From the sequence record ON529852.1: a DNA stretch of 64,000 nucleotides; one strand, written 5' to 3'. The notes under the pieces are model-generated. The model saw nothing but the letters and a program-made list of their open reading frames with translations. It did no database searches and was not told the DNA's origin. This document shows positions 7,213 to 37,233 of this stretch, piece after piece (within the stretch, counting starts at the first letter, position 1; each line of letters opens with the position of its first letter). Position numbers and translations under genes: made by a program.

Positions 7213-7542
7213 ATGCATACCCGACAACCCGAAGAGTTCGCCCGCATTCTCGACGAGGCGGCCGAGCATATCGCACGCCAACCGATCCATCCCGGTCAAT
7301 CCCTGCCGGGGTTATGGAACCTGGACGACGATTCTCACGAGCCGGCGCGCCTGATCGGCGTCATCGTGGCCTCGGCCCTGGCCCAAGTCTGCAAGACCGG
7401 CGATTGCGACCTGCAAGAGGCGCTCGCCAGCTATGCGGCGGTCTCCCACAACATCCCCCTGGTCGCCAAGGGCGGTCCGGACGTGATCGCGGCGCAGAAC
7501 CTGCGCGACGCCGCCCGGACGCTGCGTGAAGCGCGTCACTGA
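7213..7542 (+). CDS. hypothetical protein
   Basis: 109-aa ORF, AGGA SD-like sequence, followed by a terminator. Confidence 0.7.
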   Translation: MHTRQPEEFARILDEAAEHIARQPIHPGQSLPGLWNLDDDSHEPARLIGVIVASALAQVCKTGDCDLQEALASYAAVSHNIPLVAKGGPDVIAAQNLRDAARTLREARH

Positions 7543-7672: not shown

Positions 7673-7684
7673 AAAAAGAAATCC

Positions 7685-7756
7685 AGGCGTGCTTCCGTTA
7701 CACTAAACCGGCGAGGGTCATGACCCTCGGACGCCGGCTGCGGGATCGAACCGCTC
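7685..7756 (-). ncRNA. circularly permuted tRNA-like module (T-arm, closed acceptor stem, D-arm)
   Basis: GCGGTTCGATCCCGC, then AGCCGGCG...CGCCGGTT, then AGTGTAACGGAAGCAC; closely similar to the tRNA-like domain at 12874-12930. Confidence 0.5.
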
Positions 7757-7903
7757 TACCTGTGTATCCGCTGTCCGCGCCACGCCAGCGTCCGCCGCTA
7801 AGCGGGCGCCTGGAGAGTCGAACTCCGACAACGAAGATTCGGACCAGCCCGTCGGCCGGTCCACGAACGCCGCGACGCCGAGGGAGGCGCCGGGGCGATC
7901 GAA

Positions 7904-8374: not shown

Positions 8375-8711
8375 GTGGGGAACTTTCTGTTCCAAGGCCC
8401 GGCAAGCCGGGGTTCCCCATACCCGTGGACGCCCTTAGGCGGCCAGGAGGACTCGTTCGCCAGCGGCGAAGTTGTCGTTGTGTGCTTCGACAGTTGTCAA
8501 AGTTGGATCGTGAGCGGCCGAAACCGCCATGCAGACCCTAGCACTCGCCATTCAATCCCGTCACCAACGTCAATCGATACTGGTCGGCCCCTCAAACCGC
8601 GCCCGTCTCCCATCATAGGAGGGGGATTGGTGGAGCCGACGGGATTCGCACCCGTGTCTTGTCCGTCTGTTTCGTTCTCTCTGCTTCGGTCCGAAGACCT
8701 CCGCGCGACGA
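8375..8711 (-). ncRNA. ssrA: two-piece (circularly permuted) tmRNA, alphaproteobacterial type
   Basis: Acceptor piece ends ACGGGTGCGAATCCCGTCGGCTCCACCA (CCA end at 8628); 36-nt intervening segment; coding piece starts GGGGCCGA at 8591 (G3.U70 Ala identity); tag ORF 8491-8435 reads VEAHNDNFAAGERVLLAA*. The 8375 end is approximate. Confidence 0.9.
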
Positions 8712-8853: not shown

Positions 8854-8862
8854 CTGGTGTCG

Positions 8863-8999
8863 GTCTGGAAAGGGGAACCCGCCCGTGCCCGCCGCAGGTC
8901 CCGTGGTCGGTCCCGGCGGCGTCAGGGTTTCACGGCCCCAGGTCGACCCTCTCCCGTGATAGAGGGCGATACGCTGCGGACGGGCTCGCCTTTCCAGAC
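8863..8999. ncRNA. candidate ~137-nt long-hairpin RNA (6S-like architecture?)
   Basis: 11-bp terminal helix GTCTGGAAAGG/CCTTTCCAGAC, further stems and a central bubble with side hairpin CCCTCT/AGAGGG. Confidence 0.5.
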
Positions 9000-9058
9000 G
9001 AAAAGGACCGCCCTGTTGCACTCCCCGGAGGGATCGTGTGACGGCCCGTGACCCTCGC

Positions 9059-9087
9059 CTTATAGCGGAATCGGCCGGGGCCGGCAA
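9059..9087 (-). promoter_or_regulatory. sigma70-type promoter heading the tRNA/ncRNA cluster
   Basis: TTGCCG, 17 nt, TATAAG on the minus strand. Confidence 0.55.
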
Positions 9088-9232: not shown

Positions 9233-9970
9233 ATGCTGCACAGTGTTCACGGCACGGTTCCGAAGCTTAAACGATGGTGCGGGCCTTCCGCCATCTCCAT
9301 CATTACCGGCCAGCCCTATCACCACGCTCTGGCGTTGCTTAAGGACGTCAAGGCCGCCAGACGCACCTACCGTGTCACGAAGGCGCCGATCGTCAAAGGC
9401 GCGTCATCGCCTAGCGTGCGTACCGTTCTGAAGAGCCTGGGTTATCTGACGACGCAGCGGGTGACGCCGGCAGGGATCACCGTCGCGGCCTGGCTGGCGG
9501 CGCGGCGCCCCGCCGACCAGTTCACCACCTTCCTGATCGTGGCGGCCAACCACTGGATAGTGGTGCGCGGCGAAGAGGCGTGCTGCGGCATTCTCGGGAC
9601 GCCGACGCCGATCGGTCAGATGAAGTTTCGACGCGGCGTCGTCACGGAATGCTGGGTCGTCACGCCGTCCGCGCAGGGCGTGGCCCCGATCGTGACCGAG
9701 GCGCGCAAGCCGCCCGCGCGGGCGTCGTCCTCCTGGGACCGCAGCGAGGCCCGCGACCGCCGCGCCTTCGTCAAGCTGGCGCGCCAGCACGCCTTCACCT
9801 ACGACATCGTCCGGGATTGCGACACGATCCGCTACATGGAGATCGCGCCCTGCGCCATCTTCCCCAAGGGGCTGGACACCCTGCACCATGACTGGGCGGA
9901 AACCCTGGACCGGGTCCGGCATTGCCTCGATCACCCCGAGGACGCCGCCTCGGGCAGCTACGGCCGCTGA
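9233..9970 (+). CDS. hypothetical protein, N-terminal C39/papain-like Cys-His motif
   Basis: WCGPSAISIITG and NHWIVV segments; followed by a terminator. Confidence 0.6.
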   Translation: MLHSVHGTVPKLKRWCGPSAISIITGQPYHHALALLKDVKAARRTYRVTKAPIVKGASSPSVRTVLKSLGYLTTQRVTPAGITVAAWLAARRPADQFTTFLIVAANHWIVVRGEEACCGILGTPTPIGQMKFRRGVVTECWVVTPSAQGVAPIVTEARKPPARASSSWDRSEARDRRAFVKLARQHAFTYDIVRDCDTIRYMEIAPCAIFPKGLDTLHHDWAETLDRVRHCLDHPEDAASGSYGR

Positions 9971-9977
9971 ACGCAAG

Positions 9978-10010
9978 AGCCCCGACCGAGCGATCGGTCG
10001 GGGCTTTTTC
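9978..10010 (+). terminator. rho-independent terminator (possibly bidirectional)
   Basis: GCCCCGACCGA-GCGA-TCGGTCGGGGC followed by TTTTT. Confidence 0.8.
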
Positions 10011-10035
10011 TCGCGCCATCGTTTGTATCTCGGCC

Positions 10036-10952
10036 GGCGCAGCGTCAGAAGGGTGTGTCGCTAGACCTCCGTCGCGGCGCCAGGGCACTGGGGCTCCCTA
10101 GCACAATCCTCACCTGAACGTGGCTTTCCTCCCCAAGGGGCTGAAGGTGGCGGTGTCCAGGCGACCCTGCGGGGCTCACACGACAAGGCCTCTTCTCAAT
10201 GCCAGGCATAGAAGTAGGCAGAGAGCATAGGTTCTTCCTACCCTCGTCATTGTCGTGGTCCGATTTCCGTCTATCACAGCCTCTGGCTGCCGTCACGCCT
10301 GGTTCCCATTTCTAGGACGGCGTTCCCCTCAGAAGACGGGTCCTGGTGGACCGCGTGCGGCTCTTCAGCGCCTGACGGAACTCGACGACGTGGTAGCCGG
10401 CCGTCTGAACAAGCGTCCCCAAGCGCTCCCAGGGACATGCCGTAGGAGTGTGGCAGGGTCCGCCCCACGCTGTGTCAGGATATACGACAATGAAGAGGAG
10501 GGGTCAATACCGCCTCTGGCGGCCGTCACGCCTAATCGTTCGTCTCGGGCGGCGTTCCCGTCAGGCCTGATTGTCCCCGGCCGAGGTTTGTTCGGGGGAG
10601 CGGTGCGGTCAATCACCCCGACTCACGTTCTCTCGTAACCCGACAGTACGGGCTTAAGCGCGCACGAGCGCTGCAAGGCAGTCACGCGGTGGTCGACTTG
10701 GTGAGGTCATCAAGCCCAGTCGCGCAATCCCACCCTGTATGACGGGATTCACGGCTATCGTCAAGGGGAAACGGGCGCTCTCTCCCGGTCACGCCTCGTC
10801 CTGATGTCTCAGCCGGCGTTCGCTTCAGACAGTGCGGCAGTCTCGGGGCCGTCCCACTCTCCCGCTGTCGTCGGGCCTGTTCCCAGAGGAAGGTCTACCC
10901 CAGGGCAGTCTGCTCCAGAGGCCAGGTCAGGGCGAACCCTGTGTGCTGCGCC
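10036..10952 (-). ncRNA. candidate ~917-nt large structured ncRNA (GOLLD/ROOL-class size and context)
   Basis: Interval between two terminators with no convincing gene; 8-bp end-to-end helix GGCGCAGC/GCTGCGCC; second long-range helix 10889-10897 with 10062-10070; three copies of an internal motif. Confidence 0.65.
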
Positions 10953-11094: not shown

Positions 11095-12483
11095 TCAGCC
11101 GCCGACGAGGCCGTCGTCGAACTCCATCGCCTCGACCTCACGGATATAGCGCAGGACGCTCTCCGAGAAGCCGTCGATGTGGACCCATCCGTTGCCGTAG
11201 CCGATGCCGTTTTCATAGCTGGCGACGTTGATCATGTAGGCCTTGCCGGCCTTGGGCGCCGGCAGTCGCCCGCCACCCATCCCGCTGCTCAGCGTTCCCG
11301 ACGCCTGTTCGTCGGTGATGACGATCAGGCGGTCGCAGGCGAACTGACGGTTCACCACGTCCACGGCCTGGGCCAGGGCGGTGCCGTTGTGCGGCTGCGA
11401 ACGGATCACCGCATCGACCCCCGCCATGCCCTTGCGGGCCGGGACCTCGACCAGACCGTTGGAGAAGGTCACGACGCGCACGTCGCCCGGCAGGATCGCC
11501 GCCAGCGTCGCCGCCGCATCCATCCGGGTCAGGTCCGACTTTCCGGACAGTTTTTGCCGCATGGAGTAGGAGACGTCGACCATGACCACGGTCGAACCCT
11601 TCAAGGGTTCGGCCTGATCAATCGTCGCCACGAGGGCGTCGTCCAGCGCCCGCTCGAACGAGGGCGCATAACGCGCCGCCGCCGTGAAGCGGAAGGGCAG
11701 GACGCGGTCCGCGCCCTTGCGCGCGCGGATCGCAGCATTGACCAGATCGCGGTCGACGCCGGCCTGCTCCATGTTGCGCAGGTTGCGCAGCAGGGCGAGG
11801 TAGCCCAGTTTGCCGTCGGCCAGCAGACGCGTGAACGTCGCCTTCTTGTCGGCGCCGCCCGACAGGGCGACTTCCCAGGTGTCGGGCGCCGTCAGTTCAT
11901 TGTCGACCAGCTTCTTGTAGAGGACCTCGCGGTCGTCGTTCGCCGGCTTGGCGTGCGCCAGAAACAGAACGTCGCGCAGGCGCACGGACTTGGCCCGGTC
12001 GTACTTGGCGATCTGATAGGCGTCGAAGTTGCCGAAGGCCAGCGACAGCCCCTTCTTCACCTGAGCGGACAGCGGCGCCTTCTTGCCGTCGGCGCGCACC
12101 GGGTTGAGCGCCCAGTAGAGAGCCAGGAACTCGCTCAGTTCATCGGCGCGCTGGATGACGCGGGCGATGGTCAGCGACACCAGGGCCGAGCCGGACCCGC
12201 GTTGGGCCAGAACGACGAGCAGCAGAAGGGGGACGTGACGCAGCTTGGCGTCCTCACGCGCTTCAATCGCGATCTGGGCGAGGGTCTCGACCGGAACTTC
12301 CTTGGCGAGGCTCTGGATACGGTCGGCGATCGACACGCCGCTCTCGTAGAAATTGTCTTCCCACAGCAGGCAGGACATGACCGACCGGCGCAGGGCCTGG
12401 GTCTTGGTCATCCGATCGGCCGGTGCGCCTTCATGGGTGCGCGCGGTGGTCGTCTTGGGCTTTGCGTTGATCGACGCCATAAT
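11095..12483 (-). CDS. rsr: Ro60/TROVE-domain RNA-binding protein with C-terminal vWA domain
   Basis: Start probably ATG 12483 (MASINAKP, GGAGG SD). THEGAPA, LRRSVMSCLLWEDNFYE, KYDR, TWE, YLALLRNLRN, RVLPFRF; vWA MIDAS DVSYSM...T...VITDEQ. Confidence 0.92.
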   Translation of the reverse strand: MMASINAKPKTTTARTHEGAPADRMTKTQALRRSVMSCLLWEDNFYESGVSIADRIQSLAKEVPVETLAQIAIEAREDAKLRHVPLLLLVVLAQRGSGSALVSLTIARVIQRADELSEFLALYWALNPVRADGKKAPLSAQVKKGLSLAFGNFDAYQIAKYDRAKSVRLRDVLFLAHAKPANDDREVLYKKLVDNELTAPDTWEVALSGGADKKATFTRLLADGKLGYLALLRNLRNMEQAGVDRDLVNAAIRARKGADRVLPFRFTAAARYAPSFERALDDALVATIDQAEPLKGSTVVMVDVSYSMRQKLSGKSDLTRMDAAATLAAILPGDVRVVTFSNGLVEVPARKGMAGVDAVIRSQPHNGTALAQAVDVVNRQFACDRLIVITDEQASGTLSSGMGGGRLPAPKAGKAYMINVASYENGIGYGNGWVHIDGFSESVLRYIREVEAMEFDDGLVGG

Positions 12484-12508
12484 GGGTCCCCTCCTCGTCT
12501 GGTCAAGC

Positions 12509-12675
12509 GACCAAGAGGTCGGGGAGGAACAAGCACGAGCCCGGTTCATCCGGTGCGTCTACCACTTCCGCCACCTGCACCAGAGATGCAGGCCAGGACT
12601 TGAACCTGGATACCCTTGACGGGCGCCGGCTCCAGCGAAGTATAGGCTCGTTACGCCATCCCCGACCTCTTGGTC
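12509..12675 (-). ncRNA. Y RNA, YrlA-like unit 1
   Basis: 17-bp terminal helix; TGGCGT/GTTCC internal motif; permuted tRNA domain: CCAGGTTCAAGTCCTGG T-arm, loop-closed TGCA acceptor-like stem, GTGGCGGAAGTGGTAGACGCAC D-arm. Confidence 0.8.
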
Positions 12676-12995: not shown

Positions 12996-13170
12996 AGAAG
13001 CGTGTGGTGGATCGACAGGGGAACCGGCGGAAAGGCGCCGTTTGGACTATCGTTCTACCAACTGAACTACCGCCGCGCCCGAAGGTGCGCCGAGTGGGAT
13101 TCGAACCCACGACCTACAGTTTGCGAAGAAGGCCTCTCCCTCACCACCTGTCGATCCGCCACACGCTTCT
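12996..13170 (-). ncRNA. Y RNA, YrlA-like unit 4
   Basis: ~23-bp terminal helix; TGGTGA/GTTCC motif; GTGGGTTCGAATCCCAC T-arm, TTCG-capped acceptor-like stem, GTAGTTCAGTTGGTAGAAC D-arm. Confidence 0.8.
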
Positions 13171-36209: not shown

Positions 36210-36615
36210 TGCTTCGAGAAGACGACGAGGATCGTCGAGCGTCTCCTGGCCGCGCACGGGTCAGGATCAACGCCGTCGTCTCAGGGAGACGCGGACCTAA
36301 GGCGATAGGGCTCCGCGTCAATGGGTGAAGTGAGGAACGGACGGCGCATCCGTGTTGGAGCCATAGTCCAGGTGGGCGATTCACTGCCTTACCCGGACCG
36401 AGTCGCGGTAATCGAATGCTGCCGCGTGACGTGACGCCGACCGACAGTAGAGGATGGCGTGACCTAAGGGGAGAGGCCCATGCAGGGCGGACCGCGTCGG
36501 ACGCGGCCGCCGACTAGCCGGAGGGGCTGCACACCCGATGGACAGGATCGCCCCGCCCGCGAAGAAGCGAATGGGGGATGACGCCGGCGCAGCCGAGACA
36601 GACGATGCGCACGAA
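36210..36615 (+). ncRNA. candidate ~400-nt structured RNA
   Basis: Helix-dense, no credible gene; helices GCGTCTCC/GGAGACGC and AGACGACG/CGTCGTCT; shares the ACGCCG...GGCGTGAC motif and 3' tail with the 10-kb RNA; ends are approximate. Confidence 0.5.
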
Positions 36616-36645
36616 AAAGGCCCCGATCGCAAGATCGGGGCCTTT
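36614..36645. terminator. bidirectional terminator between two convergent ncRNA candidates
   Basis: AAAAA-GGCCCCGATC-GCAA-GATCGGGGCC-TTT; same 10-bp stem as the terminator at 11011-11034. Confidence 0.8.
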
Positions 36646-37233
36646 GACGTCGTGGCGGGGTCCTCGGTTTTCATCGTCGCGGCCGGCGTGCCTTTCGCTA
36701 AACGATCCCGCATCTCTTCGCACCGGGCGGACCCGGACTACTTTACCGCCGGCCCCCATACGGTGAACCTCGAAGGCAGAGCCTCTAGCGCATCCTACCG
36801 GCGCCATAGCGGTGTGTGAGGAAGGGGTTCTCACCTCACGATCAGGGAAGTGGACGACCGGGGAAACGTCCCGCCGGCCCGATCGTCCGGGCATTGCGCC
36901 CTTGAAAGCGAAACGGCAGGAGGGGACTGGCCCGTCCTGCCGCTCTATGACCTGGGGAGTGGCGTACCTGTCCCGGCGGTCGGTGCGGTGGCGCATGGTC
37001 CGAAAGACCAGAGGAGCCGCGTGATCCGGGGTAACTCGAAGGTCCCGCGCCTCACCCGCTGCTGTTTATTCGCCCCGACATGCTGATCCGGGACTACTAG
37101 AACTGGTTGCCCCGTCGTTCCAGCCGGGGACTGCGTGTGGCCGTCGCCAATACCGCCTTGGTCCGTTCCAGGAGCCACCCTGCCTGAGCAGTCGCCAGCG
37201 AAGCCGATACTGAAAGCGCCTCACTGAGAAGAG
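36646..37233 (-). ncRNA. candidate ~590-nt structured RNA (ROOL-like size)
   Basis: Strong promoter upstream and terminator downstream; no credible gene; two AGUA/GAA loop-E hairpins; long-range helix 37195-37202 with 36694-36701. Confidence 0.6.

Follow-up and report, generated by a model that had tools for sequence, protein, structure and literature searches.

A predicted pseudoknot-plus-hairpin RNA fold of tailed phages, multiplied in the RNA-gene island of the Brevundimonas phage Kabachok

The window analysed here, a stretch of 64,000 nucleotides (nt), comes from vB_BpoS-Kabachok (ON529852.1, window position 1 being at about 186,001 of the record), a 356 kb Brevundimonas jumbo phage of the Dolichocephalovirinae. 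It raises the question of what the short RNA module is that recurs on the minus strand between positions 10,269 and 10,833, and what it does for the phage. A preliminary description had taken the module for a tertiary or protein-binding element with kink-turn geometry, reiterated within a giant RNA. We find that a reiterated, structured RNA module with invariant flanks, conserved in related phages, is indeed present, but that neither the kink-turn geometry nor the giant RNA is supported. The module is instead predicted to be a compact autonomous RNA fold of 45-70 nt, in which an H-type pseudoknot is followed by a hairpin. As per our analysis the most likely role of the motif, with a probability of roughly 45%, would be that of a cis-acting RNA boundary or processing element. 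Since only sequence-based evidence was used, we infer, and do not observe, all that is said below on function.

Three minus-strand copies were found where they had first been placed, as matches to GAACGCC-N8-30-GGCGTGA at 10821-10789, 10557-10526 and 10325-10293, and there are exactly three such matches in the 64 kb (0.05 expected; none of 100 shuffles reached three). Also, the identity reported downstream of the second and third copies was recovered (21 of 22 nt between 10533-10512 and 10300-10279). The variant seen on the plus strand at 36427-36463 is present too and is a true family member (21.5 bits, E about 8e-4) by covariance model R1, which was built from 22 copies and at E below 1e-3 gave 47 copies (44 distinct) in Brevundimonas and Caulobacter phages and related contigs. 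Helix S1 of the fold has 2-3 base pairs (bp) and joins the 3 nt before GAACGCC (N11 to N13, together N3) with the first bases after GAACGCC-G, helix S2 is ACGCC/GGCGU, and 3′ of S2 an invariant linker GAC(A/G) leads to a hairpin of 4-6 bp (hairpin 2) with an AGA or GAGAGA loop. The copies in the window are then as follows, the columns being those of the model-based alignment A2.

10765 to 10833, minus strand: copy 1 (R1 64.4 bits, E 1.5e-15); S1 10823-10822/10813-10812; S2 10819-10815/10795-10791; linker GAC 10790-10788; hairpin 2 10787-10784/10775-10772, loop AGAGAGCG
10502 to 10569, minus strand: copy 2 (R1 66.1 bits); S1 10559-10558/10549-10548; S2 10555-10551/10532-10528; hairpin 2 10523-10518/10514-10509, loop AGA
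10269 to 10337, minus strand: copy 3 (R1 70.7 bits); S1 10327-10326/10317-10316; S2 10323-10319/10299-10295; hairpin 2 10290-10285/10281-10276, loop AGA
9993 to 10053, minus strand: copy 4, degenerate (R1 12.8 bits), CUGA-CGC-UGCGCC...GGCGCG
36421 to 36484, plus strand: copy 5, the variant without A15 (R1 21.5 bits); S1 36431-36432/36441-36440; S2 36434-36438/36456-36460; hairpin 2 36468-36470/36477-36479, loop GAGAGG

Copy 3 has one G.U pair in S1, where the related phage Marchewka has A-U. Copy 4 has lost the GA, UGAC and hairpin 2 elements with S1 and S2 still pairable, and is fused to an intrinsic terminator (about 10011-9975, minus strand), a layout seen also in Marchewka (contig L002, 4095-4153). 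Copy 5 retains S1 as U13-A22 and G12-C23, and its hairpin stem is GGG/CCC. It adjoins a DNA methylase gene and a gene at the position of an A1-like DNA-transfer gene (hypothetical protein in the Kabachok annotation), and is followed by a terminator at about 36614-36646, some 130 nt downstream. This neighbourhood matches that of the single long-loop copy of phage phiCbK, suggesting that a rearrangement has split an ancestral cluster. The R1 scan of Kabachok 1-186 kb gave no copy, and in the window it gave only these five; therefore the motif is not a genome-wide signal in Kabachok.

The order of the strands (S1 5′ strand, GA, S2 5′ strand, G, S1 3′ strand, linker, S2 3′ strand) interleaves S1 with S2 and thus gives a classical H-type pseudoknot, of which both helices covary and the linkers are sterically possible (L1, 2 nt over the 5-bp S2; L2, 1 nt; L3, at least 4 nt over the 2-3 bp S1). 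Pair 13-22 reads CG in 32 sequences of A2, GC in 7, and AU, GU and UA in one each, and has the second-highest mutual information in the alignment, behind a pair of hairpin 2; pair 12-23 reads GC in 41 and UA in 2. By all five measures the S1 covariation in A2 beat at least 487 of 500 shuffles (all 500 by four of them) and exceeded all slid controls; these controls do not allow for phylogeny, though the instances are paralogues together with copies from unrelated phages that share little flanking sequence. A further set came from an exact-pattern scan of IMG/VR with CUGA dropped (GAACGCC-N4-30-GGCGTGAC-N3-9-(G/C)AGAG), which gave at least 168 stretches, with 152 distinct instances among the matches listed, on contigs of 36-72% G+C. 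For the 152 listed instances, 13-22 is paired in 87% (43% on shuffling), 12-23 in 83% (46%) and 11-24 in 51% (32%), and every Watson-Crick and wobble pair type occurs at the S1 pairs. As the patterns fix S2, the GAC linker and the loop, the invariance of these parts in the IMG/VR set is partly by construction, whereas in the model-based set A2 S2 does vary and GAC does not. S2 is nearly invariant in A2 and the changes that occur are compensatory (C-G to U-A at 19/63, A-U to G-C at 16/66, C-G to A-U at 17/65 and C-G to G.U at 20/62); a cyanophage copy has ACCGC/GCGGU. Hairpin 2 has more than 12 different stems, every one of them paired. Minimum-free-energy folds of whole units were uninformative. 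The flanks are invariant as first described, but the loops, described as variable, are not simply so, their first 2-3 bases covarying with N3; the 5′ part of the loop is YGARA in most copies.

It follows from the G.U pairs in S1, S2 and hairpin 2 that the structure is specific to the transcribed strand. This bears on a signal at the DNA level, whereby a strand-specific single-stranded DNA hairpin or a protein-bound inverted repeat would act in replication, recombination or promoter control. The inverted repeat does have invariant arms, it abuts -35 hexamers in the Kabachok cluster, and helicase, methylase and A1-like genes lie nearby. But the arms are anything from 4 to 30 nt apart, and the -35 hexamer may be 17 nt away or as much as 26. 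Covariation of the pseudoknot type, G.U pairs and an orientation that strictly follows transcription and the transfer RNA (tRNA) genes are marks of RNA, and we consider a DNA signal extremely unlikely.

The same S1 pairs bear on the kink-turn. In the preliminary description the ACGCC/GGCGU helix, with tandem sheared G.A pairs beside it and a 3-nt bulge before them, formed an elbow for tertiary contacts or the binding of an L7Ae-type protein in an internally duplicated giant RNA. There is a likeness in sequence: as in a kink-turn, GA and GA dinucleotides flank a Watson-Crick helix and a 3-nt segment stands 5′ of it, and G14, A15, G67 and A68, which border the helix, are invariant or almost so (G14 with A68 in 43 and A15 with G67 in 39 of the 44 sequences), a sequence compatible with sheared G.A pairs. 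A short C-helix is also possible, with 8-69 as GC in 40, 7-70 as UG in 27 and UA in 5, and 6-71 as CG in 26 and GC in 2; these pairs are formable in 26 of 44 sequences, with one independent compensatory event. However, a kink-turn needs N11-13 to be unpaired, whereas N12 and N13, in the supposed bulge, are partners of loop positions 23 and 22, as many compensatory changes and strong covariation in two independent data sets indicate, and S1 is sterically incompatible with G14.A68 and A15.G67 extending the ACGCC/GGCGU helix. The C-helix does not seem consistent either: its CUG is not conserved beyond the Dolichocephalovirinae, and G71 is taken up by hairpin 2 in class A hairpins. Natural variants have G15 or lack position 15. 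To our knowledge, no homologue of L7Ae or YbxF is known in alphaproteobacteria. Therefore the kink-turn is not supported, and as an explanation of the module it is very unlikely.

Within the Dolichocephalovirinae, a conserved UGA stands 5′ of N3 and the pair U7-A28 reads UA in 33, CG in 3 and UG in 2. Through U7-A28 and tandem G8.A26/A9.G25 this UGA may extend S1, which is uncertain and not general. Extra tertiary pairs in the fold (5-21, 5-30, 7-28, G8.A26/A9.G25 and a P0 helix 6-8/69-71) were tried and set aside, being suggestive only in this subfamily.

Conservation and covariation in orthologous loci, which the preliminary description had named as telling, were both seen (R1 scan, alignment A2). 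The module was found in every sequenced relative examined, with the number of copies given below.

Marchewka: 3 copies
Gurke and Kikimora: 1 canonical and 1 divergent copy
CcrColossus: 3 long-loop copies and 1 short-loop copy
CcrPW: 5 copies
phiCbK, Magneto, Rogue and BL10: 1 long-loop and 2 short-loop copies
Metagenomic contigs L012, L018 and L024: up to 9 copies

The usual form in the wider family is 45-55 nt long, with a linker of 8-14 nt, a 5-bp hairpin and a GAGAGA loop; nothing is conserved there upstream of N11, and CUGA is absent from most members. BLAST found carriers among cultured phages of Synechococcus, Planktothrix, Rhizobium, Bradyrhizobium, Pseudomonas (Itty13), Stenotrophomonas (phiSHP3), Morganella and Providencia, the hosts thus being alpha- and gamma-proteobacteria and cyanobacteria. 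Judged from these pattern and model matches, the predicted fold is widespread in tailed phages, and in Kabachok and its Dolichocephalovirinae relatives the motif is multiplied within an RNA-gene island of small RNAs, tRNA-Cys, a permuted transfer-messenger RNA (tmRNA) and tRNA-Met. An origin from the host was rejected, the strict Dolichocephalovirinae-type pattern giving three chance-level matches in 185,579 bacterial genomes; the lambdoid-type copy was not found in E. coli genomes. No family of Rfam 15 matches the motif (whole window; 7-14.5 kb at E up to 5; single motifs of 100-460 nt at E up to 10), and no description of it was found in the literature searched by phage name and sequence string. 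The present analysis derived the fold of the motif as well as its distribution and context.

What do the copies belong to in Kabachok? The unit bodies and the promoter-like sites that bear on this are listed here.

10338 to 10945, minus strand: bodies of the units ending in copies 1-3, namely U1 about 10945-10834, U2 about 10728-10570 and U3 about 10472-10338 (5′ ends deduced)
10736 to 10764, minus strand: promoter-like site after copy 1, TTGACG, 17-nt spacer, CATACA
10479 to 10507, minus strand: promoter-like site after copy 2, TTGACC, 17-nt spacer, TATATC

A sigma-70-like pattern (TTGAC-N, 16-17 nt, -10-like hexamer) follows hairpin 2 not only in copies 1 and 2 but also in many relatives, and about 14 of the 44 family members have the TTGAC hexamer 1-20 nt past hairpin 2. 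The Marchewka counterpart of the site after copy 1 reads TTGACC, 17 nt, CATATA. The promoter-like sites of the two phages have kept their hexamers with diverged spacers, and the 40-nt block of the site after copy 1 is identical at 29 of 40 positions as against 37-40 of 40 in the RNA bodies; a generic promoter scan did not list the site at 10736-10764. Overall, RNA bodies and motifs are 95-100% identical between Kabachok and Marchewka, inter-unit spacers 65-75% and the coding neighbour (open reading frame, ORF, 9233-9970) 80-88%. The phiCbK ortholog is one unit made up of promoter, body, motif, body and terminator, and a 5′ box, AGGCGCAGCAC, is common to Kabachok U1 and the phiCbK/Rogue unit. 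The Kabachok locus is therefore a cluster of separate small RNA genes and not one giant RNA. Growth of a giant RNA by internal duplication, as first proposed, does not agree with copies that end separate units with their own promoters, with the Ro60 terminator that lies upstream, or with most other phages having the motif in single copy.

The high constraint on the unit bodies, above that on nearby coding DNA, is what a trans-acting RNA would show, the motif being either a conserved handle of such RNAs or itself an RNA of 50-70 nt freed by tRNA-processing enzymes. Its partner would be a conserved protein, e.g. Ro60, a host ribonuclease (RNase), or a host defence protein which the motif neutralises. 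In line with this, the tRNA-flanked layout seen in some phages would free the motif as a discrete RNA, the Ro60 gene adjoins in Brevundimonas phages, and invariant purine loops are typical of protein contacts. But the Ro60 linkage is not conserved (in Colossus some 25 kb separate the motif cluster from Ro60, and no Ro60 match came from phiCbK-type phages or most other carriers), the Y-RNA-like matches lie on the other side of Ro60, and most phages have the motif in a short protein-gene spacer without a promoter or terminator of its own. A trans-acting role is on balance unlikely.

Y RNAs of the YrlA type have a terminal stem with the Ro60-binding GNCGAA and a tRNA-like domain, and are encoded beside Ro60 (PMC4201824). 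The motif was considered as such a Ro60 ligand and rejected: CGAA is not conserved in it (N3 varies), the YrlA family RF02553 matches elsewhere, at 13048-13118 on the minus strand upstream of Ro60, and the motif is also present far from Ro60 or in phages giving no Ro60 match. CcrColossus has three YrlA-type matches upstream of its Ro60 (contig L017, 5067-5678). YrlA (RF02553) and GOLLD (RF02032) resemble the motif in being structured phage non-coding RNAs of the same RNA-gene islands, near tRNAs. The suggestion that it is a sub-motif of GOLLD was not borne out, as RF02032 has no match in the window at gathering score or at E up to 5 and R1 finds no copy on the strand of the phiCbK GOLLD. That RNA is bona fide (phiCbK contig L020, 5570-6056, minus strand, and the same in Magneto; 165 bits, above the gathering score), contains an embedded tRNA-Gly, and lies directly upstream of tRNA-Cys on the strand opposite to the motif. 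GOLLD is present only in phiCbK and Magneto and absent from Kabachok, Gurke, Rogue, BL10 and Colossus.

The position of the motif relative to other genes is the main guide to its role. It is always intergenic and co-oriented with its neighbours. A tRNA starts about 6-15 nt past hairpin 2 in 12 of the 152 listed instances, and lies just upstream in 9 of the 152, mostly at 1-9 nt with two at about 18-22 nt (measured from the tRNA 3′ end to N11, 3 nt before GAACGCC). The entire tRNA-tRNA spacer is made up of the motif in three contigs (L053, L087 and L157), tRNA-Cys starts 7-17 nt past it in Colossus, PW and contigs L012, L018 and L024, and in phiCbK and BL10 an initiator tRNA-Met ends one base before it. 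In two contigs (L027 and L034) it stands 5-6 nt past a stop codon, in phiSHP3 between the major capsid gene and the next gene, and in the Morganella lambdoid phage it immediately precedes a terminator and the holin gene. The UGA is not a preferred end of any ORF, and so a stop codon or recoding signal was set aside. An intrinsic terminator was likewise rejected, as hairpin 2 has no U tract and tRNAs follow at 6-17 nt without an intervening promoter; with a tRNA 7-17 nt downstream there is no room for a promoter, and therefore the motif is not an efficient terminator. It is not a general phage terminator either, since neither Kabachok 1-186 kb nor the rest of the window gave a copy, and promoterless tRNAs follow it. 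The comparisons thus show a conserved pseudoknot-plus-hairpin at the junctions between functional RNAs that is transcribed through. Beside the motif we also observed tRNA-like genes with long insertions or two T-arm-like hairpins (L012 2874-2990, plus strand; L008 about 7380-7480, minus strand; L205 2577-2680, plus strand), which ARAGORN does not call.

An antitermination or anti-pausing RNA, HK022 put-like or anti-Rho, is a further reading. As it emerges, the fold would bind RNA polymerase or keep Rho off, and transcription would in this way reach the end of long untranslated RNA-gene clusters and of late operons. Put, an RNA of about 70 nt which the phage encodes, acts in cis without the help of any phage protein and has two domains (PMC9378689); the motif resembles it in size and two-domain build. 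Invariance across phages of very different hosts fits a universal partner such as RNA polymerase, several copies stand in the leaders of late or packaging operons (before holin, HNH and small terminase genes) or before untranslated tRNA/tmRNA arrays, and a terminator directly follows in the Morganella phage and in Kabachok copy 4. However, the 200 nt downstream contain a terminator-like hairpin in 11 of 136 cases, no clear excess over the background of about 5%, and a signal for loading polymerase would not be expected to stand so close to start codons and to tRNAs on either side. Also, put consists of two stem-loops with a minor-groove triplex and no pseudoknot and begins with AGACG (PMC9378689), and put does not share the placement of the motif by tRNAs and start codons. 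The early region of HK022 with putL and putR (20-32 kb) gave no R1 match, so identity with put was rejected. We consider antitermination improbable.

The protein genes that follow the motif bear on a ligand-sensing riboswitch, in which the ligand would bind in a pocket of the pseudoknot and hairpin 2 would act as expression platform. Compact H-type pseudoknots are known from the preQ1, SAM-II and guanidine-III riboswitches, and the motif is likewise compact, with about 25 invariant nucleotides and a linker of variable length. An ORF start with a Shine-Dalgarno sequence lies within 150 nt downstream in 91 of the 168 listed instances (median 35 nt past the loop), the motif often standing 10-40 nt, in the region of 25 nt, upstream of the start codon. 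But the proteins encoded next belong to unrelated families (RuvC-like resolvase, head-tail adaptor three times, connector, DNA methylase, holin, HNH endonuclease and unknowns), many neighbours are tRNAs or promoters, hairpin 2 has no U tract and does not sequester the Shine-Dalgarno sequence, and there is no Rfam riboswitch match at E up to 10. A riboswitch is accordingly highly improbable.

We thus return to the boundary or processing element. The motif would act in cis on the transcript, separating an upstream RNA (small RNA, tRNA or messenger RNA, mRNA) from a downstream tRNA or mRNA. Cleavage would take place at or adjoining the motif, by the RNA itself or by a universal RNase, and each product would keep a stable cap, the upstream RNA being closed at its 3′ end by the pseudoknot and the downstream one opening at its 5′ end with hairpin 2. 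Three points argue for this role. What all positions share is that the motif follows directly on the 3′ end of one unit (small RNA, tRNA or ORF) and adjoins the 5′ end of another. A tRNA that ends 1-9 nt before a stable 50-nt structure needs an endonucleolytic cut at the junction for its maturation. Also, two stable halves joined by an invariant linker are the layout expected if a cut leaves a 3′ cap and a 5′ cap. Invariance of the sequence across host phyla favours a universal enzyme or self-cleavage.

A functional model for this role is given by the RNase III sites of T7-type phages, which are intercistronic and co-oriented; polycistronic RNA is cut at them, and the pieces retain hairpins that stabilise them. 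The motif shares the intercistronic, co-oriented placement. RNase III hairpins are long irregular duplexes recognised by the host enzyme, with a sequence not conserved between phage groups, whereas the motif is a pseudoknot of invariant sequence across host phyla.

The self-cleaving version would make the motif a new class of small ribozyme with pistol-like topology, cutting at the 5′ edge of the GAC(A) linker, within it or next to it; the RNA would in this way divide tRNA arrays and polycistronic phage transcripts into structure-capped products without host RNases. In the pistol ribozyme (about 50 nt), a 5′ hairpin loop pairs with a downstream strand in an H-type pseudoknot, followed by a short conserved linker and a 3′ hairpin. 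The motif has the same order of elements and a similar size of about 50 nt, and pistol too occurs in phage-like metagenomic DNA. The likeness is in topology alone: there is no sequence or covariance-model similarity (no RF02679 match at E up to 10), and unlike pistol the motif has an S1 of only 2-3 bp and a conserved GAGAGA hairpin loop. A precedent for RNA-only processing of viral tRNA precursors exists in the small hepatitis delta virus (HDV)-like theta ribozymes, which process phage tRNA 3′ ends and, like the motif, are small structured phage RNAs within a few nt of tRNA ends (PMC10879173). Unlike theta, the motif also stands before tRNAs and between protein genes. Two known classes were tried by name and rejected. 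For HDV-like/theta ribozymes, hand mapping on A2 gave the helix order S1-S2-S1′-S2′-hairpin as against P1-P2-P3-P1′-P1.1-P4-J4/2(C)-P2′; the motif has no P3/L3, has A16-U66 in place of the +1 G.U and a paired 5′ flank, and has no Rfam HDV-type match. Against the hammerhead (CUGA-N-GA, stem II, GAAA), the motif has three nt at the N7 place, GAC for GAA and no stem I pairing, CUGA is absent from most family members, and there is no Rfam match. As one form of the boundary or processing reading, a new ribozyme class is considered unlikely.

Several points weigh against the boundary or processing element. The processing step is purely inferred, being read from position alone. A purely protective or insulating structure would not need some 25 invariant nucleotides. 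In some cases (phiCbK; window 36.4 kb) the copy lies inside a longer transcript, whose terminator is still 130-170 nt ahead, and the spacing to upstream tRNAs, mostly 1-9 nt and about 22 in two, means that no fixed cleavage register is evident. As regards the fold, the S1-crossing linker of 4-6 nt in short-loop copies limits S1 to 2-3 pairs, so that the extended S1 of the Kabachok subfamily is uncertain. Also, the R1 scan covers Kabachok up to 250 kb, and BLAST gave no further near-identical copy.

The motif cluster lies in the following setting, read from high to low coordinates.

Minus strand, first item: helix-turn-helix protein gene
Minus strand, after this gene: about 900 nt of non-coding DNA, holding the sub-threshold YrlA match 13048-13118 (minus strand)
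11095 to 12549, minus strand: Ro60 gene (TROVE plus vWA), a context neighbour outside the motif
11037 to 11010, minus strand: intrinsic terminator of Ro60's own
Minus strand, between Ro60 and the terminator at about 10011-9975: the 1.1 kb stretch of repeated modules
9233 to 9970, plus strand: convergent ORF of 245 aa with a good ribosome-binding site, without Pfam or PHROG match
Minus strand, beyond this ORF: tRNA-Cys, permuted tmRNA (8435-8690) and two tRNA-Met

The ORF at 9233-9970 separates the motif cluster from tRNA-Cys and occurs in Brevundimonas phages only. The permuted tmRNA (8435-8690) is in two pieces and lies between tRNA-Cys and tRNA-Met, where the GenBank record has only three tRNAs. 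Just upstream of tRNA-Cys, a 200-nt non-coding stretch (8860-9065, minus strand) is 95-100% identical between Kabachok and Marchewka, above nearby coding DNA, and contains a degenerate CUGA-CGC-CGCCG...CGGCG element; it may be a further structured RNA. Between tRNA-Met genes (7673-7903, minus strand; phiCbK contig L020 7280-7500, plus strand) there are tRNA-like fragments with a T-arm plus CCA-like ends and a tRNA 5′ half, together with a YrlA-like match in phiCbK, and these may point to tRNA-like RNAs of a permuted or decoy kind. Five RNA enzymes are encoded by Kabachok outside the window.

ON529852 72093 to 72518: peptidyl-tRNA hydrolase
ON529852 88795 to 89622: tRNA-His guanylyltransferase
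ON529852 92562 to 93716: CCA-adding enzyme
ON529852 114393 to 115700: seryl-tRNA synthetase
ON529852 148407 to 149645: RtcB RNA ligase

With these enzymes, Ro60 and the Y-like RNAs, the phage has what amounts to a toolkit for RNA repair and maturation.

Should the fold and distribution be borne out, tailed phages have in this motif a structured RNA family that is both new and widespread. Some 25 invariant nucleotides are kept across phages of alpha- and gamma-proteobacteria and cyanobacteria and on contigs of 36-72% G+C, a conservation not usually met outside ribozymes, riboswitch cores and RNAs with universal machines as partners. Since the motif sits where tRNAs, small RNAs and cistrons begin or end, the question of how phages process their tRNA arrays and long operons can be put directly to the test. 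If it were catalytic, it would be a new natural ribozyme class and also a compact tool to define RNA ends.

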